Shown piece by piece: positions 16,601-41,900 of a DNA stretch of 64,000 nt. The notes below the pieces were generated by a model. It ran no database searches. It was not told the DNA's origin and was given only the letters and a program-made list of their open reading frames with translations. The first letter of the stretch is position 1; every line of letters starts with the position of its first letter. Made by a program: the position numbers and the translations under genes. This stretch comes from Glycera tridactyla (lineage: Eukaryota), in NCBI GenBank assembly GCA_965644265.1, contig OZ286459.1, positions 74,958,001-75,022,000 on the forward strand, read 5' to 3'.

Positions 16601-19600
16601 CAGTTAGGTTGGCATTTGATCATGCAGTGATGTTTGTGACCTTCCAGTGAAGTAGCTCACTAGACTTGCAGGAACATACATGTCACAACAAACATACAAT
16701 ACAACCCAACAAACCCGAGGAAATATCACATTTTCATCTTCGGTACCAACATACAATGGTTATGCTTCTGTTTCCAAATACAGAAAGGAGTGACATTACA
16801 GCAACTGATAGTATTTGCTGAGTCTGTCTCCAAATGTAATAACCCCGGAGTGCTGTAAACATAGCTCAGTAAGAACAGCAGCCTGTATGTTGTTATTCAT
16901 ATTGGTGAATTTATCATGGGTGTAACTGATCACATCTGAAATACCTGCCACCAGTACAGATCCAGATTGATACAAGAATCAATGCTTCAATCAGAGGACC
17001 CTAACTTGCGCCTAAACAAAAATGATGTGTTCCACTTAAAGTTTGCTTCTCATGTAAGTGAAGATTCAGTTTATATTCTCATAGTCTATAACTGCCTATA
17101 TTAGTGCAGTGACATGATTGACTCACACGCTGGTACCTAGAAAACTTGCTTGGAGGCATCCTTGACCTAATTGTTCTGAATTATACAGACCCCAAACTGG
17201 CCAACTGAAGGCTAAGACATGCAGAATGGCACACCTGTTAGAACACCTGCATAATCTGTGCTCAAATGCCACTAATTAATGATCTAACTACCAAAAATTC
17301 TCACATACATGTAGTTTGTTGAGATGGAGATTTATCAATTATGATGTAGTTATATTTAGTTTTCACCACATCAATGCTGCTGAAATGTTTGGGGTTAGCT
17401 AGGCGACCACCTGTCAATTAAAGAATCATGGCAAAACATCTACTGCCAATGGACCTTGTGGCTGCAATATGAAAGCTTTGATCAGGATTCAGTCATCAAT
17501 TATATGTCTCAATCAAGCAAATTCTTAGAATGTAGTGATACATTCCATTGACATCATGAAAGAAGACATACAAGAATCTTATACTCACGCTAATTGCAGT
17601 GTATCCTCGTACAAAGACGCGATATGACTTCCCTCGTTGTAGTGGTCGATTTGTGAACTCTCCTGTACCAACTTTCAAGCCATCGCCAAGACGGAATTCT
17701 TTCGGAAGATCGATAAATTTGGCTGCTATCCAAGCCCTCTCAGCTCCGCCCGGTCCTCCAACTTTGGAATCTTCAAGCTGAAGACAAACCCACAAAAATA
17801 AAATCTAGTATCTTCTGGCTCAATCGTTAAGGATGAAAAGAATGAAATTGCCTGGGTACATGTTTGCAGAAAATTGAGAATTTGCAATGGAGATGCAGAG
17901 ATTATGATCACAGTAGAAAATACACGAATGATTAAAGAATATCATGGGAACATATAGGTATAGATAAGATACATGAAACCTGAAATGCAGTATCAAATTT
18001 AATCGCTAGAACATTGATACAAATGACTGTAACAATACAAATAAATGTACTTTGGAAAATCAGTGATCAAATGTACTGAAATGTGTAACTGTGGAATTCT
18101 TACCTCTTTGATCTGGAATGCCGGATCTGAAGGCATCTTGTGCCGGGCGATCTCTTCAGGTACAACAATGATGTAGTAGCTAATGACAGGTCCATGCTTC
18201 TCTGAGGCCTTATACAGACGCAGTGTCAACATGGTGTCAGAGATTGAGTCATGGAACTCTGGTGCCTGAATATTTGGTGGAGCTACATGAAAAATAAGCA
18301 CATATTACATGAGGAATATAGAGTGTGGCTGATTGGCTGATGTTCAGGACATGAGCCTAAACCATGTGACATGTATACACCACCACTTGCGAGGCTTACA
18401 TCACCAAAAACACATGGAGCACAATTTTGTAGCAAAGTGGGAGGCATCATCTCAACACATGACTACTCAAAATTAATTAGAGATGCAACACAGATATACA
18501 GGGCTTAGAAAGCATATATATGCGTAATATATAGAGACAGTTCCTAAACACACAAACTAATTTGCATTTTTCAATCAAATTATCTTGAAAAATAGACAAA
18601 CTACAAATTAATTGAAGGCACACATGGAATGATGAGGCTAAATTCAATCTAGGGGGTTGCATAGATCGGGAAAGGGTGTTTGAACAATATCACATTGGAA
18701 TATCGAGATATACATAATCTCAATTCTTAGCTAATGTAGAAAAAACAAATCACGCAAATTTGGCCAAGCGTAGCATGCCTAATCATGTATTGAACATATA
18801 TTTTGAACAGAAAAGTAATAAGTAACACGGATTTTGATAATTAAAGTATATAAAGTATCAAACTACTAGCTTTTCAATGGAAATAGTAAAGCACAGATTG
18901 AAAACAGGGTTTGACATTTAACCTAGTCTTTTGAGCCAGTCATTTTTTGTTTTCCACCTGATATCATTAATACTAACAACATTAACATGCACCACACTAT
19001 GTTCTCCTAAAACTGTTTAATTTCCAAACTGAAAGACAGCAACTGAGGAAACAGAGAAGGGGAGATGTGGTTCAGTGGAGAAAAAAGGAGGAGGAGGATG
19101 AGGAGGAGGATGCAGATGAACCCTTCGAGCCTGAGAATCTGGAGGATGGCAAATGGAAATCAGTGATGATGATGACGATGATGATGATGATGATATGGAT
19201 GATGACATGCGTTGATGGAAATTAGAAAGGGTGCAGATCTCATGCTCACTGCCATGTGAGCAATTCAGCCTGTTAGTGAAGAGTGCTCAATGTGTGAAGA
19301 AGAGCGAGTGCTGTGGGGGATAAAGCTAATGTGAGCCAATACAAGTGTGACACTGACGAGACTGCGCCGACTCTACAATGATGACGAGAGTGCCAGCTGC
19401 CGTGGGTGTGAAGTGCGCAATTGTCTCAATCACAGCAGGCAGGCAAACAGCCACAAGATAAAAACAAGAGTCTGTGACAGAGGCAAGGTGAGCAATAAAA
19501 AGGCACGTGCCAAGGAGGCAATGGACTAACCGTCTATACTGGTCTCCACACGGAGTGGATAGTCTGGTCCCCATGTGCCATCCATAAATTTGGCACTGAT

Positions 19601-22600: not shown

Positions 22601-23914
22601 TTCAGACAAATTTGGGGAGTCAACTGATGTGCTAGATCAACCTATATGCAACGATTTACCCTAGTATTATCAGGTTCCTGATCACAGTGCCAATCTGCAT
22701 ATGTGCTGAAGAGGGAATGAAACTGGTTTTTACAGCTCAATCAAGGAAACCCTAGTTCAAAGGAGCACCTTGTTATCTGGTAATACAACATAGACTCCAT
22801 GATGAATAATACACCTCAATTATTGTGACCAATCAAAGTTATTTTTTCATGAGTCAAGATGATGCCCTAGAATGTCCAACATTCTGCTTTGCATATACAG
22901 TCAAACTTGTCCTAAGCGGGAGGTCACAGGATGGACCAAAACCTGTCGCTTAGGACAAGTTCTCGCTTAGTACATGAAGACTGATGCTCATGACAATGAT
23001 CTTTCACAAACTCTGATCTCTTTTGAAATGGCCCCGTCAGACCTCGAGGAAAACAACAACGGAGAAAGCCAATTCGCATAAATTATGTTAAGTAGGTACT
23101 TCCGGTAACTTCACAACAATCTGAAAATGGTGCCAGGTTTGCAATTAAAGATGCCAGCCTCTTGTTTTCAGTGGGAAATACATGATTATTTGGCTTCAAC
23201 ACGTGTTTTCAGTATCAGGAACCACCGCATCATGGATTGAACCCGTGAATCATTGAAGTGTGGAGAGCGAACGACCTAACAATAGCCGGGGTAAGGCGTG
23301 AATTGGCTTGTCTAGCTACTCACTGAGCACCGAGAACAACTGGCTATTGTTTCTGTGCATGCTACCATGTCGTCTTTGTATACGATAGTGACTCACCTGT
23401 ACTGAAGGGTCACATTCAATACAAGTTGAGTGGCTTGACGGGAAGCCAAATCATCGTTTGCTATTTGCGTAAGGCAGGTTCACGCTTGGTACAGGTGATT
23501 TATAGTGAAAATGTGGTCGGGGGGGAATCTGAAGTGTTCGCTGAGGACAAGATCCCGCTTAGAGGAGGTTCACGTTGAGGCAAGTTTGACTGTATATCTA
23601 TTGGGGTGTTCTCATGGAGATGGGAACAAAATCTTGTTGGTATTTTAGTGGCAAAGATATCGACTAATCTCTCTCTTTGTGTCAGAAGTATTTAAAGAAA
23701 TCCCTGGTCATATACTCAGTGTAATTACATGGATCCATGGAGGGAGAGGCACAATGGTGCCCATAAACATCATCAATTTCAGAGATTCTTATTCACAACT
23801 AGTATTTTGTCACTCTGTGGGAAACCTGAGTAAGTCCATAGCAATCATTACATTCAATACACTCAATCAAATTAGGGGTGAGTGAATCCTCTCGCACATA
23901 CATGCATGCATGCC

Positions 23915-23967
<53 letters not shown>

Positions 23968-26900
23968 TCAGTTTACTCAACGATAGGAAAGGGTACCATA
24001 CAGAAAAGACTACTATGAGATGATGTAGGCAATCGTCAATAACTTAGTTCCTTTCAAATTAGGCCAAAGTGGACAACCTTTCCAAACAGGCAGTGAGTCC
24101 TGAGACAATCTGTATCCAACTTCCTTCAGTCCCACGCCCTCAATTATGGAATCAGGTTTTCTCAATAAAGTGATTGATCCTTACCGTCTCTTGCCAATTT
24201 TCGTGAGATTCATGGTGGAAAAGGATCTTATGTACATGAGACAGTAAAACCTGTCTTGAGAGACCGCCCCAAATGCCAACAAAAAGCGGTCTCTCATGAC
24301 AGGTGGTCTCTCATTGGAGGTATATTTGACTATGTCAAATAGAGAAGAGCCGATAAAGAGCGGTCTCCCATTAGAGGGTGGTCTCCCAAAAGAGGGGTCT
24401 CTCAAGACAGGTTTCACTGTAGTACACAATCTTGATGTGTCATGAAAAGTAATTTTATTGCACATAAGACATGTTGAAAAATATTTCTGAGCACTAGTAA
24501 GTATACAGAACAATGCAGAACCTCTCAGTCACACTGCGACAGTTCACTTGGACATGGATGAGTACTACGCAATCTTCTTATTGGTGTACTCAGAAAGAGG
24601 ATGTGAATGACCAGAGTCTGGACAGACCAGAATGTGTCATAACCTTTTGGACTTCTCACTGTGAGATCATAATGTTTGGATATGAATTGCCAAGTCTTGC
24701 AGATTCCATCATATCCAATTTCTATCTCTGATAAATCTCTTTTCCAAGGTAGCTACCCTTCTTGATACAGTCAAAAATTTGCCAGTTAGAACGCTATTTC
24801 ATCACAGCCTTCTCCGTACTGCCATATACATATACAGTAAAACCTGCTACAGTGAAATCCTGTCTACAATGAAATCCTGTCTACAGTGAAAAGAAAAATC
24901 TGGCCAGAACGTATTTTTTTCACTATAATTGACCTGTTTATAGTGAAATCCTATCTACAGTGAAAAGAAGAATCTGGCCCGTGACTTTTCACTATAGACA
25001 GGTTTTACTGTATAAATGGACTTTTTCATTGCAAAATATCAATCTTGGTTAGAGAGTTGACAAAGGGTAATGTACATGTATAGGAAAGTTAAATGACTGG
25101 TCTGTTGATCATCCTGCATGGGGAAGTGAAGAAATCCAACTTAGAATTGTTGAGAAACTATTGCACTATGAATGTTCAAATTGAGAAAATTCATCATTCA
25201 TGATTGGAGATAGTATTTCAAAACAGCAACAAAATTTTATTTTGAGTAAACGTATGCACTCTGACTGTAAATGATGATGGATTTGTGTTATTTAGTTAGT
25301 AAAAAGTTCTTCTAACTTTATAAAGTTCATTTTGGATGGATACAATGGCATCAAAATTATCAATGACGATGAATCATCCTTATGTATGTTGAAAAATATG
25401 TTCAGTTGTGGGGTTGCAGATGGCAGAACACTCTTCAATGCATACTTCTGCAAACTGTTTTCGTCATATTCATGGCAAAAACGTTATCTACTCATAGTGA
25501 TCATCGAGCACTCTGTGCATTTGGTACTACAGTCAAACTTCTGATAATATGAACCACCTCTAAGCGGGATCCTGGGGGAATACTTTCAATTCCCCCAACC
25601 AAATTTCACTATAAATCACCTGCCTCACGTAAATAGCAAATAAGAATTTTGTTTCCCACTGAGCCCCTTGACCTGTCCTAAACATGACCTGTCAGCAGAC
25701 TGATCAGTACCGGTGAGTTGGCAGGCAGTTGATCCAGCTCCCCATATTTTTCACACCTCTATTGTTCTGAGTGAGTTCAATAAAGAATCGTTGCCTGCGC
25801 AGGTTTTAATGCTACTACAGTCAAACCTGTCCTGAGCAGCCACCCTCAGGGAAGGCAAAAAGTGGCTGCTTAGGGCAGGTGGCTGCTTAGTACAGTGGCT
25901 GCCTAGGACAGGTTAGACTGTATATCACCAGTTCATTGGTTTGTTTGACCCTATAGCCCTTAAAGCGGAACAAAACGGAATTCAATGGCATGTATCAACC
26001 CTAAGGTTATGTATGTTGAGTGTTCCTGATTGATGAAAGATGTTCTCTCCCTTGCAGACATCACTCTCACAAACCCTGAACACAATATGATGGGAATCTG
26101 AAAAGTGGTCGAGTGGAAGTAGCTGACAGTTCAGACACACCAGCTTGTGAGCAGTCTTTATTGAGGCAAGAGTCAAACCAGATTTCAGATTGTATACATG
26201 TTTTTCACACCTCATGTTCACACCTCACCGGGGCTACTGTTCAGCCTCTCGCGCCTGCATATGTCAATGATTCACAGTGTTCACTTACCGATGAGGCGAT
26301 TTCCAGTAAAGCTGATTTTGTCCTAATCTGGTTCATTCTGCAGCCTCCCACTTAAGTCATGTTTGACTGTATTTATTTACCCTCACCATTATTTTCAGTG
26401 TTCTGAGAGTGATCATGTTCTGTGAAAATTGCACTTCACTCAGTGAGTACCAGCTGAATTAAGATTCACATACAAGTTGACCCCCTCGTTTCTGGCTCAT
26501 AGTATGGTGCAATCATCATAAACATGGGTATATATATATGCAAGTATATATGGTGACTATATGATCCTCTTGACATGACAGAGACCAGGCATAGCTTTCT
26601 ATCTCATCTCCACTTCTCCTGCTTCTGGTCTTTCATAGACACATGGGAAAAATAAGATCCCAAATAGCAAACACAATCAGGGACCAACAAAAATGCTTCG
26701 AGCCACAGTGTATTCAAGTGATCACTGTGCAAATAAGTAACCGACAATTGCTAAAATAAATGATGAAGAGAACTGACTTGACAACCAATGGGCATCATTT
26801 TTGTGATTCATGAAGTCTTAGAACCGAGAATTGAGTTGGTATGAACCTATGAGAACAGTGGGTTACCATACCATCTATATTCTGAGATAGATCAATACAG

Positions 26901-29900: not shown

Positions 29901-32900
29901 ATTTCATACAGTGATTCACAATCGGGAAAATACTGCTGCTGATGACTTGGGGAAAACACATACTTTCTTGCAAATTCAAATCTCTGTTTGAAAACCTGAC
30001 TACAACCATGAGGATAAATTACCCAAGAAGCTTGTCTCGTGCCGATATCTTTCTCCATCATATACTGTTGCCACATTGTTGGGATCGCCCTTGATTCCAA
30101 ACGAGAGTTTGTAGCCGAGGAGATCGCCGTAGGTTTGCCGAGGAGCCTGCCAGGTGACGAGGACCGTTGGAGGATCTTCGGACTGCAGCTGGAGCATCAG
30201 GCCACGCGGAGCACTCGGAACTGTCAACATGAAAAACAGTATCTCATTAGGAATCGCCTCACATGAAAACTGGTGAGTTGAGTTTTCAATCTACCTCAAA
30301 TCACTCAAATCCCAAGTACTGATCTGTACCTGCGTTTTGCTTCTAGGAGATGGAATAAGTTCCTGAACTTGACCATCAAATAAGAACATCCATGACTTGG
30401 AATGCATTCAGCTGCAGAGTTCAAAACTATCATCATTCAAACTAGGAATAGGTGTCAAAAATATTTCCGCAATGCCATTTAGTGGTTGTAAAAGGGGACC
30501 ATTGTAACTTCAGTAAGTCAAACAATGAGTGGAAACCTGATGGCTCAAAATACGTTATCTGAAATCCTAAAATCTAATATCAATAAATCTGGCAGAAATC
30601 GATAATTTGGTTGAGTATCCATTCATTCTGGGTCAGAAATAAGAACCAAAATTTCTTACTTAAGGCAAGAGGGGAGTACCATAAGGCTGTTTCACAAACA
30701 GGTACCCTACACTGACAAATAACTACAAAACCCTAAAAATAATCCAGATTATGTCAATATCAGGAAAAATATTGGAAGATTAATCCCTAAATGTATCTAT
30801 TCAACTGCATGTATCATACGTCAGGGATGTTGGATGCTGATCAAGGAATTCTTGCAAATCATCTTTCTGATGCAGAACCACTAATTGGGAGTTTGATGAA
30901 ATAAATATGATTAAATTTGCCTGAGAAATTGTAGTTCAGGAAATGCACATCATTGAATACAGATGAACTCTTCCCATATGAAAATAAGTGTCCAGAAACT
31001 TGCGATGGGATGTCAGTTGAAAATCAAACTGAATGTGTTTCCACGAAAATATAACAAATTGAAACAAACAAAATAACAAATGTGTTCAACTCATCCTTTT
31101 TAAAGACATGATATAACCATGCATGAATACCCTACAACGAGGCTGAATTCAGATTCCTGAAAATTCTCAGGGCATTGAAATCCCTGATCCTAGCAACATA
31201 GATGCTCCTTATTTGCTGATAAGAGAATTATTCAGTCTATAAGAAAACATTTGATGGCCTGCAATGGTGAGATTACATGAAACCAATACAGTCTTTTCCA
31301 TATTTCTGTTGTGATTGAATTATTGAGAGCATCTATACAGCCACACCATGATAAACCTGAGACCGATGCAGGTTTGTAGGATTCTTTCTGATCATTCCGG
31401 TCTTACATGGCGAAAAATTGAGAATCGCTCATCCTTAGTGGTAATTGGGATGATTCCCCATCATTAGGAATGTAGGTCAAGCAATATCTTACAAAGTTTA
31501 TAACTTCTCCTAGATATTACACATGACATGATATTCAAAAATATGTAGCATCATAATGGAGATTAGCGTGTTCAACATGTCAAGTTGAGCCTTGAAATGA
31601 AATGAAACAAGAGCCTGTAGTGATAAACTAGTGAAGAGGACCAACAAAGCAACAAATTATGTCATGTCATCAAATCAAGCTTGAAGGTCAACACAATCCT
31701 TAAGTATACTTTTCTGAAAATGGTTGGGAACTTGTTCTTGGAATCAAAAATATATCCAGGTTAAATAGCCTTGATGAATATGCATGAGTGAAAATATCAA
31801 ATCATCATATGAATATACTTATTGTGTTTTGTTCTGAAGTATAGTGAAACCTCTCACGGGAGACCGCCCCAAATGCCAATCGAAGGCGATCTCTCAAGAG
31901 AGGTGGCCTCTCATTGGAGGTATATTTGACTATGCCAAAAAGAAATGAACCAATGAAGAGCAGTCTCTCAAAAGAGGGTGGTCTCTTAAAAGAGGTTTCA
32001 CTGTACTATGGATGTTTGTATTATGGATGGTCATAGGTGATGAATCTCATACTGTTTTTCAGCACTCGAGATTAGACTTCCTGAGTAAATGTTACTTAAC
32101 ACTTGATGATAGACACGAGCTTGTTATAGGGGTGATGGTAAAATACTTGAATGATCCAGCCTCAGTCAATCAATCCTGTCCCGGTATTCAATAATGTAAG
32201 CAACAAACTCCAATGATTGGAATGAATAGCATTCTTCCTTCTCACCCTCACTTTCTTAGCAGTCCTGAACGGAACCATGGTAGAAAGACTTTCTGTTGTA
32301 TTGTGGAAAAAGTTGTAGTGACTATTCCAATGGCACTCAAGTCTTTCTTACCTTTTACAAGGTTAGGTTTATAGAAATTATCTGAGTCAGAGTGGAAAGT
32401 GATATGGGATTAAAGTAGGTGTTGACTGCAATAGTGCATAAATGAATTGATTTGATCAGCTCTCCGATCACATTTTTCGATGCTGATCAGGGTAGTACCT
32501 TTTATATTGTCTACTCATTGAATACATTCATGGTAGGATGTAATGGTAGAAATGTTGAGAAGCATGAATTTGCAGACTTTCAATGGAGACGGAATACATG
32601 CTGAATTGATTATGCAGTAAGTTGGTTTTGGAAGGAGAATTCATGATGCAAAAATGCTCACTTTGAATCATATGGACATTGATTCAGAAATTTATCTTGC
32701 AGTAGATGTTATTGTCCATGTCCAACCCCTTTGTAAAACTGATTAGTATGGGATCAAAAACCTGATGTTTATACCCTTAAATGATACCAATAACCTGTCT
32801 TATCAAGGGCGAAATTATCTAAGTGCAACAAATATGATACCATGATCATCATGTTTACATAAAATATCTCCCAACCTCAATAACCTTCAAGCAAAGAGAC

Positions 32901-35900
32901 CCAGATCTCCACAAGTCATTCTCAGACTCTCATACCCGCATGTTGACCATGGCTAATCAAACCAAAACATAACAAGCATCTTTTTGCATTTTACAATTAT
33001 CCTCATCAATAGCAGTATTCTACATGTGATCCTTCATTTCACTGAAGTATCTGCATTTCCTTTGTGACAATCAAATACCTCGGAGAAATCATCATATAGA
33101 TATGAATAATGTTTAGCTAACAGAAACCTGGGTTTTCTTTTCAATTCCACATCAGCTTCATGATTGACTTTCCGAGGGGGGGGGGGGGGGTGCGGGATAG
33201 GAACTTGTTATCATATTCATAACTCTTATCATAAGTTTCATAGTAGCGTTTCAGTTGATGTCAAAAACTAAGTACTTATATAGCTATCATCCCAAGTCTA
33301 TCTCAACTTCTGCATTCAATGAATGACTGAAATGACATTCAATACTTGCATACATGAATACGGTAGAATCTGCTTGACAGACCATCTCTCTATAAAGACC
33401 ACCTGCTTACAGAGGCCACCCTGAGCTGCAGCTGTTATAGTATTTTTGACAGTAAATGACCTATCTATGAAGATCACCTGCCTGGAAAGCCCAATTTCTG
33501 ATATGACTGTAAGTCATGTTGTTCTCATCTTCTTTTAAAGCAATCTTTATCTGCTATCAAGAATAAGGAGCAGATTCAATGACAACACTACTGTCAAGAT
33601 GGTTACTCGCATTCAGCTTCAAAGATGGCATATGATATTAGGGTGAGTTGAACCGTTTGTTGTTCAGAAAAAAGTATGCAGAGGAAGTAATCTTAGTGAA
33701 CAGGCTTCAATCCATGCAAACCGCAGTTCAGTCCAATTTCACTGTGATGATTCGGTTCTCACATTTGTGGCAACAATGATGGCATTATGAAAATTGCCAG
33801 ACGAAGATGGATTGCACTCCACATCTACATTTCATTCTGACCAATCATTTTCCTCTACTCAGTTGAATATGTGTCTCATGAGATAATTATAGTAACCAAC
33901 ATGAGAGTTGATACTGAGAAGATGAAGTGATTCGGACCTGGCTCTGGGATATTCACTTGAGATGAGGCTTAATTTCATGCTGCAATTTTCATCATCTTCA
34001 CACACACACGCGTGTANNNNNNNNNNNNNNNNNNNNNNNNNNNNNNNNNNNNNNNNNNNNNNNNNNNNNNNNNNNNNNNNNNNNNNNNNNNNNNNNNNNN
34101 NNNNNNNNNNNNNNNNNNNNNNNNNNNNNNNNNNNNNNNNNNNNNNNNNNNNNNNNNNNNNNNNNNNNNNNNNNNNNNNNNNTTCTAAGATTCAGGAAAC
34201 TTTGCAGGATTTTGAGTCTGACAAAAAGTATTGACTGACAAAATGACAAAAACTTTAAATAAATTGGCGAAAGGATGCATATAGCATATATCAAGTACAG
34301 GAAAAATGAGCAAGATACATCAGATTATTCTGATCCTGATAAATTCAACTAGTATGTTTTCTGTAGAGCAGGAGGGCAGGAAGAGCCTAGTCAAGCATTG
34401 ATCACAGGCCACATGCACACTTATCCATTTGGAACATAACAGCTGTTTCAAGGAGAAATGATTTAATTCACTTTCATGAGCATGAGCATTCCTTTAGGGT
34501 CCACGATTGACCTTCAAGAGAAATAATGCAGTCCTAAATCCCATCTTGGTACATGTATACACACATACAATATGTACTTCCCTTTATATGATGTCAATCT
34601 ACTGTCCAGCCATTTTATCACACTGTTTTGTGTCAAGTATTTGTACATGAATGTCCAGTATGAAACTGTACTGCTGCCAGATGAAGGCACAGATGAAACA
34701 CCAAGGTGTGAAACAATCATCACAATCTTCAACAATAACAACTGAAATTAATATCAACTTCAACATGTGATTAAGATTAACTTCAACATTGATTTATACT
34801 ATTCCCGTAACAATCCCATTAATTGTGAAGCAAACATCTTGAGTATAACGATGGGGATCACAGATCATATGCAGTCCAGGAGAGATGCAGCATTGTATGC
34901 AGTACAGAGAAATGCAGTACTGTATTCATAAGTGCAACAAACACTATGCAAATACAGCCAAACCTGCTTGAGACCACCTCTATACAAAGACCACCCACCT
35001 ACAAATAACACTCAAATAGATAACAGCAATGGTATATTATCGCATGAAATACTTCTTCCTAGAGGCTATCAGATTACGAGGTTTTTTTTTCATACCAGAA
35101 ATCGGAAATCATGAGATGATCCCTCATTCCAGGTATGTTCGACGACATCAAGTAAAAGAAGGTGGTCTCCCCACCTGAGATTTCTCGTTGTACGAGATCT
35201 ATGCATGTGCACATGCAAGTTCATTACCCTGTTTGACATATGCGAATATACCTCCGATGAGAGACCACCTTTTTGGTGGCATTTAGGGTGATCTCACATT
35301 TACTGTGTGACCAGACCACCCTCAATATCACAAAAATTGGTCTTTCCTTAGAGGTGGTGTTTCATTTGAGGTAGTTCAACTATGATCAAATAAAAAACCT
35401 GTCCTGAAAAAGTGGTTTCCCATTTGAGTTGACCTCTACTGGGTTCTTTCTCAATATAGGTTTCACTGTATCACAGATATGACGTTATCAGTGTATGAAA
35501 GAGGTATGGAGGTATGATTATAATATCTCACACTCTCTAATCTGCATATCTTACATCTGCTGTATGAGAATGAGATGCCAAATCCATGGAGGATACAAAT
35601 TATATCTCACTTGATTTGTGTGGAAATCTCACATTTCCAATTCCATCAGGTCATCGATAATGTGTATCCCACCATGGATTTGTGGTTTTAATCATCTGAT
35701 TGAATAATGGTCTGTTCACAGCTGCATTCAGTTTGTGTGCACCTCCATGGAAAGCACATGGATTTAAGAGGCTGGTAGTGCAACATGTAACAAGTGGCTT
35801 CAGATCATGCCCAGACTTGACAAGTATTCATCCGTAGCCCATGTCATTCGATGACCTACTCACTTCGACGACCATACCGACTCCGTGGTGGCTCTCTTCT

Positions 35901-38900
35901 CCCACCATCTGCTCCTGCAAGAGCATTCCTATCTCTGGTACAAGTGTCAAATAAATCTGGAGTATATACATGGATATTATTCTGTATATCCAGATTGACT
36001 AGAATCATTTCTGCAAATAGATTGTTCTTGGTTCCGAGTTGATTCATGGTAGAATGATATCAACTCACTTTGGAACAATACTGTTGAAACCGTTACACTA
36101 TTTCAACCACTCCCAAGTGAATGAAATGTATTAGATCAAAAGCATTTCTATGCTTATCTAGCTGTGTTTATACCCAACACAGATGAAAATATGTACCACA
36201 TAGAGTTCTGATGGGAGATTTTCTTTACATAATACCTTAAATGAATTGCTATTCTCCTAATGCAGGATCCTAGGATGGCAAAGAACTTCCTGACAGTGAC
36301 TGGGCATAAAAGACGATTTCAGGACTGCTTTAAATCTCACAATGAAACAAATTTGACTGGGAGACATATATTCAAATAAGGTAACTGGTAATATTCATGA
36401 GAGAAGGCAGGTGGATGATGGATTCGGGATTGTTCAGGGTGAGGGGGGGGGGGGGGGGGGGGAGGTGGCAGCTGGAATTCCGCAAGGTCATTTGGGAGTG
36501 AATATGCATACCAGAGTCACTTGGGAGTGAATATGCATACCAGAGTCACTTGGGAGTGAAAATGCATACCATAGTCATTTGGGAGTGAATATGCATACCA
36601 TAGTCATTTGGGAGTGAATATGCATGTACTAGAGTCATTTGGGAGTTGTGCAGTGACTCCGCCATATCACCGTGGCTCTATTGTCCATATTTGGAGTTTG
36701 TCAAGTACACGTAGACGTGCATGTAAATGGGAGTGAATATGCATACCAGAGTCATTTGGGAGGAAATATGCATATTGCCTGAAGGCAGGGAGGAGCATTC
36801 TGCACAATATTGCACACCAAGATCAGCTCAATACCTGGGAAAATTCTACTGGAACTCAGGACCATTCTCATGTGAACTCAGGATTTAATTTTCAAAGTTC
36901 AAATCTAATTTCATAAAGAGTATCCAATAGTGATTGTTCTTTGATGTGATTGAGAAACCTTCACTGATCCCTGGTTCTGCTCAATGTACCTTATACTACA
37001 AGACAAATGTATCTTATACTACAAGACATGCTTTGGTCCAACTATTTGAATATAGAGTGCCATCTATGGAACCGTACTCTGTATTTGTTGCCTGATTAAG
37101 GGAGGATTAAGTATACTGATTTGTCTCACAAATATTCTGAGTCTGTACCACATGATTAGCCTCTACGACTTCTGCATTCTATTCTTCTCTTATCATTTCT
37201 TGCATATCGACAATATGTAATCGTATCCACATATGAAACAGTATGTGTCTATGTAAAATTCATGGTAAATGATATCATCTCTACAGTGATATCCATACAG
37301 GTGCATTTTTCATGGAATGTCACATGTCAACTCATTAATTGCTGCTGAAAAAAAAATGCAGGAAGATTTTATATACTTCTTGTGTATGTAACATATATAT
37401 ATATATATGAGATTGTACACATATGTCTGCATATTCACATCTCGGAATGCATGTAGGATCTGCAGCTAGCCCATTTCACACAGAGCAAAACAAATTGTAT
37501 CTGAATGAAACATAAAAATATCATCCAAAACAATAAACAGCAATGCCAATGATACAATGTAAACTTTTCAGAGATAAGATTGAATTTTTGGAACAATACC
37601 CAAATAATAATTGAGCAAAATTGCTTAAAAAATCATGAATCAATTTCCTTAAAAATACCCTCACATATCATCAAAAGTATCAGTTCTGAAACTTGCAGCA
37701 AGAGTGCAGTGTCTCCTTCATTTCAATTTCTTGCACATTTCTTAAAAGTTCTGAATATCTTTGGAAAATATAGCATCACTGTATAGTGGAATCAACAGTT
37801 CAACACTTCATGAATCATGATCTTAATTCTTTTCGAAGAGCCCATCCGAGGTGCAAAAAGCAGCCTTTGGCAGAATCGGGTACATGGTATCTAGTAATCG
37901 TTTTTTCCGTGTGGGATAAACAGCAGGCTCATGATTGGCAGCTTGGAGGGTCTTCATCGACTATCACAAGGTGCGTTGGACTCTGAAAACTCTCCATCAC
38001 AAATTGCAGCTCTTGTTTTATGCTTAAATTTCTAACAAATGAATTATTCATTGACAGAACACACATCTCATTTTGATTTATTATGGTCCTCAATCAAGTC
38101 AATCTTCATAGTTACAACCCATACGGAACTTTGAATTCAACTTCATATGTTTGAAGTTAGAATTCTAACTTATACATTGCCCGAATATTATAACTCTTTG
38201 AGTATGAAAAGGACAAATTATGAACCAAAACAGATAAACCTTTTTAGGGCTTTCAGTAATATGAAAGAAAAATAATGCAATCATATCAAGCTAATCATAT
38301 CAAGTGGATGTTTGCAATAAGCTATTGGGCCTACTGCACGTTATACTGGGTATACTGGAATATAGGTCCTATTTTCTGCACCAAAATAAGGCCTGACACA
38401 CAGAAAATTTTCATCATTTGGCAAGATCGATTTCACCGAGACAAAAGTAATGTTGACAAGAATGAAGTATGTTCTTGGTGGATCCTGTTACTCAAAGAGT
38501 GTGGGAGATTCAGGTGAAGGTCGAAGAATATTACCGAATACATGTATATCCTGTTCTGGCATGATTGATAGTTTCTTTGTGGAAAAGTATGGTGTCACCA
38601 CAATAAATGGGAGAAACTGACTTGACAATCATAACCATCGTTTGGTCATTTCGAGCCATTTCTGCCGACTAGGACAACATATGAAAATACTGTCGGCACT
38701 CCTCCCGATTGCATGGAGTACAGAGCAGCCTGAGAGAGGCTATCTCAGGACTCATATGTATAATCGTGCTCAAAACTTTTCATGTTCATTCACAAATCGA
38801 ATTATGGACTAATATGAAATCTCTCTGATTGTACCCACTGGTGATAAGTGAGTAGGGTCATGAATACTGTTCTCAAAATTGTATTGCTGATCAAGCTTAA

Positions 38901-41900
38901 TAAATGCACATACCTTAACTAGACAACACTATTCAAATCTATCTAGTTTCTAAGTGATAAGCAGTCAATGACAATGATGCAGGTCACTTGGGGAATTTTC
39001 AGAGGAGTTCTATTATCTACCTCGAAGTGTTTCGATCTATATAGCTGTAATTTTCAACTTCCTCATACCAATTTAAAGATGATAATTGTTTTAAATTGAC
39101 AATTGTGCTAGGTCAATGATTTATGTGATAATATCAATGTGATACTGCACAAAAAATATAATTCAAAAACAATGTGTGCAGTGACCGTTAAAAGTCAAAA
39201 TGCATTGGCAGCAAAAACATCACCCATATTTACTATGAAATTGCATTCGGAAAAAATATTCATATTTTCTGTAGAAGAAAAGCAGCAATGATAAAAGAGG
39301 GAAATGGAGCAAAATAGGCACACAGCACAACAGTGTGCATCAAAGAGGGGTGGGGTGTTTGTGGAGAACTGATGAGGGCAGCTGCTAGAGAGGGCAGGGT
39401 TGCTGAATATTACCATTGAGAGGGGATTTGGCCTTATCAGACGCTGAAATTGAAACACAAATCAGACCGGCTACAATCTGCCCCATATACCAATCATTTT
39501 CAAATATCGTAACAGAGCAATGGAGTGATCAACCACCATCGTAACAGGTCACTGAATGGTCAATGCTACCTGTGAAAACATGGACACGAATGAAGATGCT
39601 GCATGCCGAGCCTTGTTACAACTAAAATAATGTAGTAAATGCCAGCTAATCATGTTTTTGGCAGCGTCTTTGATAATCAGATTGAAGTCAGATTGGGAGG
39701 ACTGGCTTGAACTGACCATCTAGTGATCATTGTATTTGACTTGGAGTGGTTCATGGGGTATTGCATTAACATAGTGATACTGATGGGATGAAGCCTAATC
39801 TCCGAGGATATGACTCAATTTTCGAAACAAGACCTCGCAGATTTTCTAAGGCATATGTTCTTAAACTTTCAGCCAGATGAAAGCAAATCTTTTTCAAGTG
39901 ATGTTTTGTGTGAATTTTGGGCCCCAAGAGAGTGATCAATACTTCCAAATCTTAATCTTGGACATCTTAGCAGCACACACTGATGTGATACATGATAGGT
40001 CACTGTAACGGTAATGTCAATTCACCCTCAGCTTCATGATTAGCACTATATAGAATTTATGACAACAGATTCACACAAGTAATAAGTCTTCTAGTTTGTT
40101 CACTGGTACCACCAGACAAAAATCAGAGACCTAAAATTGTATAAATTTGCTCATGAATGCTAAGAATTTCTGAGGATGGGATCATTTTTGGACGCTAGCA
40201 AAAAACAATTTAGCCTTACAATGTCTTAATATACATCTATTGTTCACACCTGACCTGATTAATGGCATGAAGCTGACGATACTCGATAGTTCTGACTACC
40301 CCATCACAGATGAAGAATACCTAACTTGATTTTCAATGCAGCTATTGCTGCCTCCAGTCAAAAAGCACTCTAGGACTTCCCCTACCCTTATCTATCAGAA
40401 CAACTGTACACCGTCTTGGTCTCATGACGAGTTGATTGAAAATGCAAGTACTGTGCAGATGAAGGTATAAGGACCGCAGTTACATACATAAAAAAACATC
40501 GGTCCAGATATTGCTTCAACTTGGACAAAAAATCCAAAATGGTCAGAAACATCATTGATGTCTAGGACAGAGGCACCTGTCACAATATGTACACTGACAG
40601 AGTGGGGGAGTACAACAACATACATAGATTTGTAGAGATGGAATTAAGACAAGATGAGGAAGACTCACCAGCTCCACGTGTGCGAACTGTCCTGGCTTTA
40701 CTCCGATCTCCGTCTCCTCGTCGAGTATAACCTGCTACTGTAACCTCATACGTTGTATCCGGCTTCAATTGGCTGATCGCAACTTCATAAACATCTTGTT
40801 CTTCCTCTATCCTTAAATCGTATCCCTTTTGTTCACCGATGGCATCTCCATTAGACACAGGGAAGTAATGAATTTGGTAACCACGGATTTTACCGTTCTG
40901 TTCTCGGGTTCTTGGAGCACGCCACTGTACCCTGATGGCAGTTGAGTTGATAGGATCCAGGTTCACATTTCGAGGTGGCCCAGGCACTATTCAAAGATAA
41001 AGCAAATAATGATTTTCAGCTTTGTTGTAATATTTGAGTTATGAAATTAACATCAAGTGCACCCTTGCTTTCTGAGCAATGTCTAATGAAATGAAGTTAG
41101 TAAAACCTTATTCCTGAGCAATAACACATCTTCAGGTCAGAATGATATTGTGAAATCGTGTTGAACAGGAACCATTGAGTTATCTGTAACCCTTGCTTTC
41201 TGAGCAATGTCTGATGAAATGAAGTTAGTAAAACCTTATTCCTGAGCAATAACACATCTTCAGGTTAGAATGATATTGTGAAATCGTGTTGAACAGGAAC
41301 CATTGAGTTATCTGTAACCCTTGAAGGTGGTCGTATATTAGGGGTGCTGAAGAAAGTGTACATGGATCCACTGATTCAGTCTACAGTCACCAGCACTATC
41401 ATATATCAAATTGATAACATTATGTAGCCATAATTTGCATCCCCATCCCTGTGAAATAATGGTTTGCTGGAAATCATGAAAAATTAAAATCAACAATTTG
41501 AAAATGTACAAGCACATTCTATCCTTAATGTAATAAATTCAAGTCAGGAATTGCTTAGCAATGTATCTCAATCCACCTGTTCAGGACAAGAAACCCAGAC
41601 AAGAAATCTCAGTGTAGATTGTAAACAAGTGAGAGTTTGTGTCAAAATAAAACAGATTTGGTGAGACTGCTGTGCACACATGCTTGACTTCAGCTATCAT
41701 CTACTCATCATACTCCGAAACATGAAATAATCAAGGACAGCTATGGTGGCCCATACATGCCACTATCATTACCGTGGTGGTAATCAATTTCCACCATGGT
41801 TGAAACATTTCCACCATGGTAGAAATTTGTCATAAAGTGGATGTAGAAATTATCAGCTTTCCACATCAACTCATTTCCTCCAGACATTCTTTCCCCACAA

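Follow-up and report, generated by a model that had tools for sequence, protein, structure and literature searches.

Host gene and site of the candidate exon

The stretch of DNA analysed here (the window, 64 kb at its full length) carries on its minus strand a LAR-type receptor phosphatase gene whose product has successive FN3 domains, then a stalk, a single TM helix and the PTP domains D1 and D2 in tandem. The Ig exons of the gene lie beyond the window's end. Matches obtained by tblastn (P0051, P0187 and others) were colinear with LAR orthologues through FN3 (51043), FN4-FN8, the stalk, TM, D1 and the start of D2, with the TM exon matched at 9987-9820 and D1 83-89% identical to the orthologues. 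The top match of the gene was the LAR of Ridgeia piscesae.

The FN5 and FN6 exons are separated by a 10.4-kb intron (10,448 nt), inside which lies a 51-nt segment that may act as a cassette mini-exon (Table 1). The acceptor of this 51-nt form reads aatgctcttgcag/GAGCAG (a slash marks an exon boundary or a cleavage point throughout), base 1 of the exon being 35914 on the minus strand; a second possible acceptor, atactccag/ATTT, would place the exon start at 35956 and give a 93-nt form; and the donor, CGAA/gtgagt, follows the final exon base at 35864. At the other end of the intron, the acceptor side of the FN6 exon reads /TTCCGAGT... from 30220. The segment has the generic marks of a cassette exon, namely an AG acceptor and a GT donor, a length that is a multiple of 3 and a reading frame that stays open in the host phase, and its terminal residues (first and last) are split with the flanking exons. 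The phase 1-1 frame is open in the 45-, 51-, 93-, 135- and 147-nt forms alike. The acceptor, alternative acceptor and donor positions given in the first-pass annotation of this DNA were borne out by the sequence, its description of the 51- and 93-nt forms as phase 1-1 and stop-free was correct, and retranslation of the spliced product returned the reading that it had reported. If intronic, the 42 nt upstream of the segment would comprise a branch region, a weak polypyrimidine tract and two UGC motifs; their GC content is intron-like (0.30-0.47).

Table 1. Positions in the window of the candidate exon, its signals and the host exons discussed in the text.
Feature	Position	Strand	Remarks
Constitutive FN5 exon	40669..40986	minus	Ends ...VRTRGA + G, G/gtgagt, phase 1; tblastn P0051, P0187
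Upstream 42 nt	35915..35956	minus	Intron 3' end, or coding if the 93-nt form is used
Candidate cassette mini-exon, 51 nt	35864..35914	minus	Phase 1-1, stop-free
Consensus 5' splice site GTGAGT	35858..35863	minus	Donor of the candidate exon
GCAUG (RBFOX-type core)	35806..35810	minus	54 nt downstream of the donor
Constitutive exon, first half of FN6	30023..30220	minus	Starts (G)TT CCG AGT = V-P-S-A-P-R-G, phase 1
Two stalk exons	17598..18282	minus	18282-18125 and 17777-about 17598; cover the canonical LAR furin-site position

Splice signals

Only three GTRAGT hexamers occur in the 10.4-kb intron, and one of them is the donor of the candidate exon. Py(-20..-4) was 0.41 at the 51-nt acceptor and 0.65 at the 93-nt acceptor, compared with a mean of 0.71 and a minimum of 0.53 for the real acceptors (n=15), all of which are stronger than the 51-nt acceptor. 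Three AGs lie between this acceptor and the sole good branch-point candidate. UGC motifs are found at -12 and -6 of the 51-nt acceptor, and of the YAG sites in the intron, 1.7% have at least two UGC within the final 16 nt. A UGC between branch point and AG characterizes 74-79% of SRRM3/4-dependent microexons (bioRxiv 10.1101/2024.09.17.613571), and the candidate displays the sequence features of this SRRM3/4 (eMIC) class, i.e. UGC before the AG, a Py of 0.41 and the donor GTGAGT. At a density of 0.86 per kb across the intron, a GCAUG at +54 would, taken alone, be a weak regulatory sign. First-order Markov simulations of the intron yielded a mean of 1.35 open YAG...GTRAGT pairs in phase 1-1; with about one such pair expected per intron of this size, the splice sites and open frame alone are not beyond chance.

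Composition and codon usage

The composition of the 51-nt segment is a real outlier. Its GC content is 59%, against 37% across the 10,448-nt intron, and its CpG observed/expected ratio is 1.08, against 0.33 in the intron and 0.6-0.9 in the real exons; the count of 4 CpGs in a CpG-poor intron agrees with that of the first-pass annotation. Only a single other spot in the intron, a copy of a SINE-like repeat, contains at least 4 CpGs per 51 nt. The GC maximum coincides with the segment, and the GC/CpG richness runs about 40 nt beyond the donor.

The codon log-likelihood (LLR) of the candidate was 11.27, exceeding the maximum of 10.0 among 21,162 stop-free intronic 48-nt windows taken from the minus strand of the whole window and placing the candidate among the highest 6.5% of windows from real exons. 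The frame required by the host was the best of the three sense frames (LLR 11.3 vs 7.2 and 6.5). When the exon's own bases were shuffled, the codon score was matched in 2.8% of trials (p=0.028). Much of the codon score is GC/CpG richness, which lifts both off-frames too, and a GC-rich non-genic patch at 11.9-12.35 kb had an LLR of up to 10. The scan of codon windows also picked up the TM exon, a real exon that had been left unmasked.

Origins of the segment other than a cassette exon

Several other origins were rejected. No copy of the 51-nt segment was found elsewhere in the 64-kb window, so that the match to a repeat family named by the first-pass annotation as grounds for refutation did not materialize. 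Duplication of the FN5 3' end with its donor left no trace beyond a best local alignment of just 11 nt. A snoRNA, miRNA or other structured RNA was dismissed, there being no Rfam match and nothing unusual in the fold of the segment, and a recursive splice site was ruled out because no GT follows the candidate acceptor. The open frame upstream has neither a signal peptide nor a Pfam match, which speaks against an alternative first exon or nested gene and upholds the earlier judgement that a nested neuropeptide gene was the less likely option. The anatomy of the site, the exon-like composition and codon usage of the segment, its lack of repeat or RNA-gene identity and its position in the protein are directly established.

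Orthologues and relatives

No cassette was present at the FN5/FN6 junction in any of the LAR-like proteins that span the conserved GA/VP junction (0 of 256, plus 0 of a further 17). Inserts at this junction in P0084, P0125 and P0149 proved to be introns retained in the ORF calls. The cassette was equally absent from the intron at this junction in Ridgeia (about 430 nt) and in the L002 relative (66 nt), which indicates that the candidate exon is not old. Conservation of frame or splice sites was not found in the relatives compared (2 introns and 270-plus proteins), all of which are distant, with about 50% identity or less over FN5-6. Searches of the region with P0009 (Sinanodonta) and P0187 (Ridgeia) returned orthologues only, whose identity did not exceed about 64% and 52% to the respective queries and about 51% to the host FN5-FN6. 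No protein from the species itself or a close relative turned up in the databases, the lengths covered being those outside 185-754 aa; the FN5-exon query, run against candidates of 58-184 aa, gave no match. In the exhaustive representative search multi-FN3 proteins came out on top, and orthologous fragments had at best about 50% identity.

Comparison with known mini-exons

Mini-exons in the ectodomain are a known feature of LAR-family genes (PMC8711739). Vertebrate meC (9 residues within FN5; WETDDTAEY in PTPRS, P0266) resembles the candidate in its small size, in being optional and frame-preserving and in belonging to the FN5 region (PMC8711739). It precedes the end of FN5 by about 45 residues, however, whereas the candidate lies at the FN5/FN6 border, and the host has no intron at the meC position because its FN5 is a single exon. 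Moreover, meC is acidic and the candidate strongly basic, without similarity of sequence; with position and sequence both different, homology of the two was rejected. The closest functional analogy for a cassette that would lengthen a linker is meB (ELRE/DQRE, between Ig2 and Ig3), a linker insert that alters flexibility and hence the choice of ligand (PMC8711739), although meB has 4 residues, is conserved in vertebrates and has a proven function, whereas the candidate has 17 residues, is unconserved and is putative. RefSeq isoforms of LAR from the oyster Ostrea edulis, also a lophotrochozoan, contain mini-inserts at domain borders, as the candidate would (AKGVDS at Ig3/FN1 and NFEV at FN1/FN2); unlike the candidate, these mollusc inserts are annotated isoforms, with other junctions and sequences, and none is at FN5/FN6. 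With the neuronal microexons dependent on SRRM3/4 (eMIC) the candidate shares a short, frame-preserving form, a strong 5' splice site and weak Py, and its host is a synaptic adhesion gene, but its 51 nt is at or above their usual upper size.

A cassette exon or a chance pseudo-exon

We put at about even the chance that the segment, as its sequence suggests, is a cassette mini-exon of a LAR-type (type IIa) receptor phosphatase, specific to this lineage and subject to alternative splicing, that codes for a basic flexible linker. Its exon-like composition and codon statistics lend support to this reading, and on the same grounds the overall proposal of the first-pass annotation stands as far as a plausible alternative exon is concerned; the convertase and amidated-peptide function that it attached to the exon does not (see below). 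Inclusion would insert 17 residues, among which Arg, Gly and Pro abound and whose net charge is about +4, precisely where FN5 and FN6 meet at a deeply conserved phase-1 junction (...TRGA/VPSAPR...), making the interdomain linker longer and more charged and disturbing neither FN fold. The consensus donor, weak Py tract, two UGC motifs and GCAUG at +54 would point to a regulated optional exon, probably neuronal, and not a constitutive one. That the segment is spliced in at all, that its inclusion is regulated and that it affects linker geometry, charge or ligand binding is what we infer. Sequencing runs searched with a 5.3-kb, mostly intronic stretch, a query ill suited to RNA data, included no RNA run, which counts against this reading.

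The main rival, with a considerable though somewhat smaller chance of being right, is that the segment is a pseudo-exon, i.e. a GC/CpG-rich intronic patch that by luck has an open frame of the right phase and lies between an AG and a GTGAGT, and that is never or negligibly spliced. Simulated introns supply open pairs at the mean of 1.35 given above, the acceptor falls below all 15 real ones, the off-frame codon scores are high and the CpG patch continues past the donor; furthermore, a non-genic GC-rich patch (11.9-12.35 kb) also reaches an LLR of 10, and the cassette occurs in no orthologue and is missing from the introns of two relatives. Luck accounts less readily for the segment being the top coding-like window against 21,162 others in the very frame that the host requires, for this top window stopping exactly at one of the 3 consensus donors in 10.4 kb, and for a retention of CpG that is not explained by any repeat.

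Proposed proteolytic processing and peptide release

The host stalk reads ...FQIKE/... and R-X-K/R-R is absent across both stalk exons, in agreement with the earlier description of a receptor lacking the usual furin site; the stretch immediately preceding the conserved YIAA motif is HRVKR in Ridgeia and RKRR/RLRR in vertebrate PTPRD/PTPRF. Owenia and molluscs likewise miss the stalk furin site, yet have no such cassette. Across the cassette and its junctions R-X-[KR]-R is also absent, RYGR being the only match to the minimal R-X-X-R. With 6 Arg in 16 residues, RxxR arises in 90% of shuffles of the cassette residues, so RYGR carries almost no information. The cassette also has the layout RR-X7-G-RR (dibasic-X-Gly-dibasic), which the same shuffles show in 7.3% of cases and which is therefore weak post hoc evidence. 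The canonical LAR-RPTP furin site (penta-arginine, RKRR, RLRR) is, as in the candidate, an exposed basic motif of the ectodomain (PMC8711739), but it is constitutive, has the optimal R-X-K/R-R and sits in the membrane-proximal stalk before YIAA, whereas that of the candidate would be spliced, offers R-X-X-R only and lies at FN5/FN6.

It is improbable that the segment is a real exon serving as a splice-switchable convertase site, with RSRYGR/R cut in the secretory pathway by furin, PACE4 or a PC5-type enzyme. Such a cut would split off or shed Ig1-3 and FN1-5, standing in for the absent stalk furin site, and it would suit a stalk without R-X-K/R-R where Ridgeia and vertebrates carry HRVKR and RKRR/RLRR, a minimal R-X-X-R joined by a further Arg at P6, and a position that would be an exposed interdomain linker. 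The near-uninformative RxxR tells against it, as do the absence of an optimal R-X-K/R-R, though 41% of shuffles have one, and the lack of both stalk site and cassette in Owenia and molluscs; it also presupposes the use of an exon that is itself a candidate. With no R-X-K/R-R, an RxxR that composition supplies in 90% of shuffles and a cassette in no orthologue, the cleavage site proposed in the first-pass annotation found no backing. A shade more doubtful still is the wider idea that neurons would choose by splicing whether LAR stays intact or sheds or splits off Ig1-3 and FN1-5, replacing the constitutive stalk site lost in this lineage.

The release of EPPRSRY-NH2, which the same annotation had suggested, fared worse. 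Here a real exon would be a neuropeptide-precursor module, cut at RR/E and after G-RR, with a carboxypeptidase trimming after dibasic cleavage and the Gly supplying the amide, to yield EPPRSRY-amide; we consider this extremely improbable. NPY-type and RYamide peptides typically end in RY-amide. The layout, in only 7.3% of shuffles, favours this module, but it is a pattern chosen post hoc. The module is present in one copy and conserved in no relative compared, and to our knowledge no RPTP has been described that gives off a peptide from an interdomain linker. A nested gene would find no signal peptide in the upstream frame, and that of the receptor itself, on which the module would have to draw, falls outside the window. 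In addition, prohormone processing by PC1/PC2 is limited to neuroendocrine cells and their regulated secretory pathway (PMC9296861). Type I adhesion receptors do not usually take this route. It would be unusual for a receptor phosphatase to undergo splice-controlled proteolytic shedding or to give off an amidated peptide; at present the only ground for either claim is a motif that residue composition largely explains.

Significance

In LAR-family receptors, tiny optional exons form a 'splice code' for the choice of synaptic partners. If the segment is indeed a cassette mini-exon, it would bring the FN5/FN6 linker into this code as an insertion point not reported before, here in a lophotrochozoan, and would mean that LAR splice codes keep evolving lineage by lineage.

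Host gene and splice frame

A LAR-type receptor tyrosine phosphatase lies on the minus strand, where tblastn matches with LAR orthologues are colinear across the whole window (listed in the table), the closest protein being the LAR of the annelid Ridgeia piscesae (50.6% identity across FN5-FN6). This colinear map places the candidate within the 10,448-nt intron that separates FN5 from FN6. The segment that the first-pass annotation had proposed as an alternative exon was confirmed in sequence, coordinates and open phase 1-1 frame, all of its positional and sequence statements being correct on a minus-strand reading. Conceptual splicing that skips the 51 nt gives ...VRTRGA-VPSAPRG..., while inclusion keeps the frame open between the flanking exons; a second acceptor at 35956 yields a 93-nt form that is likewise open. 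Long (GT)n/(CA)n microsatellites also occur in introns of this gene (1400-1590, 23880-24000 and 10600-10700).

Features of the LAR-type gene and its introns (window positions)
Feature	Positions	Strand	Basis or remarks
FN3	51043-50756	minus	tblastn with LAR orthologues
FN4	47687-47355	minus	tblastn with LAR orthologues
FN5	40986-40669	minus	tblastn with LAR orthologues
Upstream exon end	40669	minus	...CGT GGA GCT G, then gtgagt; phase 1
Candidate exon	35914-35864	minus	GAGCAG...CGTCGAA; aatgctcttgcag directly before, gtgagtag directly after
Downstream exon start	30220	minus	ttgacag, then TT CCG AGT...; phase 1
FN6	30220-30023 + about 28381-28286	minus	tblastn with LAR orthologues
FN7	27579-27218	minus	tblastn with LAR orthologues
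FN8 + stalk	21408-17598	minus	tblastn with LAR orthologues
Stalk without furin site	18282-17598	minus	comparison with Ridgeia and vertebrates
TM helix	9987-9820	minus	tblastn with LAR orthologues
D1 + start of D2		minus	tblastn with LAR orthologues; D1 identity 83-89%
SINE-like repeat copies	24243-24395, 31843-31995, 12354-12459, 35229-35470, 51777-51888		plus weaker copies

Mini-exon or pseudo-exon

From its sequence, it is plausible, and in our judgement an even call, that the candidate is an optional mini-exon, specific to this lineage, that codes for a flexible basic linker; the main rival, a compositionally odd pseudo-exon, we consider quite possible though short of probable. Splice sites and an open frame are not enough against chance, because first-order Markov simulations of the host intron give a mean of 1.35 open phase 1-1 YAG...GTRAGT pairs, as the pseudo-exon would have it. 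The host intron has a GC content of 37% and a CpG o/e of 0.33, and the candidate 59% and 1.08, the latter resembling real exons (0.6-0.9). The GC peak (0.57-0.60) coincides with the candidate, which ends at one of the three GTRAGT hexamers in the host intron, and at least four CpGs per 51 nt are reached at one other site of this intron only, a SINE-like repeat copy at 31.9 kb. In codon log-likelihood (this gene's own exons vs intronic trinucleotides), the 16 full codons score 11.27 bits, which tells against a pseudo-exon: none of the minus strand's 21,162 stop-free intronic windows of 48 nt goes above 10.0, their maximum, and the candidate's score falls in the top 6.5% of real-exon windows and is highest in the required frame; shuffling the candidate's own bases reached that score in 2.8% of trials. 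The pseudo-exon is nevertheless favoured by off-frame scores of 7.2 and 6.5, because of which the codon score must partly reflect plain GC richness, and by the CpG-rich patch continuing about 40 nt past the donor.

The acceptor of the 51-nt form also speaks for a pseudo-exon, its pyrimidine fraction over -20 to -4 being 0.41 when this gene's 15 real acceptors average 0.71 and go no lower than 0.53, and AG dinucleotides intervene between it and the sole good branch-point candidate. The 93-nt acceptor scores 0.65, its additional 42 nt being intron-like in composition. Neuronal microexons dependent on SRRM3/4 combine a weak pyrimidine tract, a UGC adjoining the AG and a strong donor, and 74-79% carry a UGC after the branch point and before the AG (bioRxiv 10.1101/2024.09.17.613571). 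The candidate is similar in all three respects, with two UGCs at -12 and -6 (a pattern found at 1.7% of the host intron's YAG sites) and a GCAUG at +54 of the donor; these features, picked post hoc, are suggestive of a regulated microexon.

Other origins were rejected: the segment has no further copies within the window, did not arise from the 3' end of FN5, matches no Rfam family and is no more stably folded than its shuffles (z +0.43). The SINE-like interspersed repeat (about 150 nt, at least five copies in introns of this gene, mutual identity 70-83%) has no copy in the window overlapping the candidate. Another GC/CpG-rich patch (11770-12350), between the stalk and TM exons, has no Pfam match, reaches a minus-strand codon score of 10 (second best of the whole window), is open for about 100 aa on both strands and contains a 10-nt tandem repeat and a perfect 17-nt inverted repeat (11772-11822).

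Comparison across orthologues

The motif T-[KR]-G-A|V-P-x-x-P-R at the FN5/FN6 junction is kept from annelids to vertebrates. An exhaustive representative search and two region searches gave 283 FN3/LAR proteins, and none of the 256 that span the junction, nor of 17 newly fetched or re-checked proteins that likewise span it, carries a cassette there. Inserts in P0084, P0125 and P0149 were rejected as retained introns, that of P0084 being 66 nt long, starting GTAGGT and finishing TTTCGCAG. Several database 'proteins' of this sort, taken from Logan contigs, translate a short in-frame intron at this junction (5018-5083 in L002, DNA of a relative) and may pass for cassette inserts. The homologous Ridgeia intron (about 430 nt) holds no open basic segment; the exon, if real, is by these comparisons young or lineage-specific. 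No protein of Glycera tridactyla or a close relative was found with the FN5 exon as query (candidates of 58-184 aa), and a search for sequencing runs with a 5.3-kb, largely intronic query brought up no RNA data set.

Proposed convertase site and peptide

As the first-pass annotation held, the usual furin site is missing from this receptor, the stalk reading ...FQIKE at the position of HRVKR in Ridgeia and of RKRR/RLRR in vertebrate PTPRD/PTPRF, just before the conserved YIAA motif; in these vertebrate proteins the site lies in the membrane-proximal stalk (PMC8711739). It is also absent in molluscs, Owenia and Anopheles, so protostome LARs may not all undergo constitutive cleavage into E and P subunits. 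Molluscs and Owenia lack the stalk site, yet have no cassette.

The further proposal, that the cassette holds a furin site and a neuropeptide, found no support other than residue composition: R-X-K/R-R is absent, only RYGR being present, and among shuffles of the cassette residues (six Arg in 16) RxxR arises in 90% and the RR-X7-G-RR layout in 7.3%. Cleavage is possible, because furin can cut R-X-X-R and PACE4 even RR, and a convertase switch would be an improbable extension. Release of a peptide would be far less probable still, to the point of being scarcely credible; PC1/PC2 act on prohormones only within the regulated secretory pathway, in neuroendocrine cells (PMC9296861).

Relation to known LAR mini-exons

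The mini-exon meC is located inside FN5 (PMC8711739), as WETDDTAEY about 45 residues ahead of the domain end in one PTPRS isoform; the candidate was rejected as meC, this gene having no intron at that position. In function, the closest parallel is meB, which inserts into the linker joining Ig2 and Ig3. Among annotated mollusc isoforms (P0177/P0188 from Ostrea edulis, P0160-P0167 from Ruditapes and P0155-P0182 from Pecten), some gain a meA-like stretch within Ig2 (e.g. EGHNPDWKLVYK), entire FN domains can be skipped (FN1, FN4, FN7), and mini-inserts occur in the stalk and at the Ig3/FN1 and FN1/FN2 borders, the oyster isoforms having small inserts at these two borders; the candidate lies at FN5/FN6. 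These differences indicate a rich LAR splice code in lophotrochozoans, and a linker cassette at FN5/FN6 would extend the known set of LAR mini-exons.
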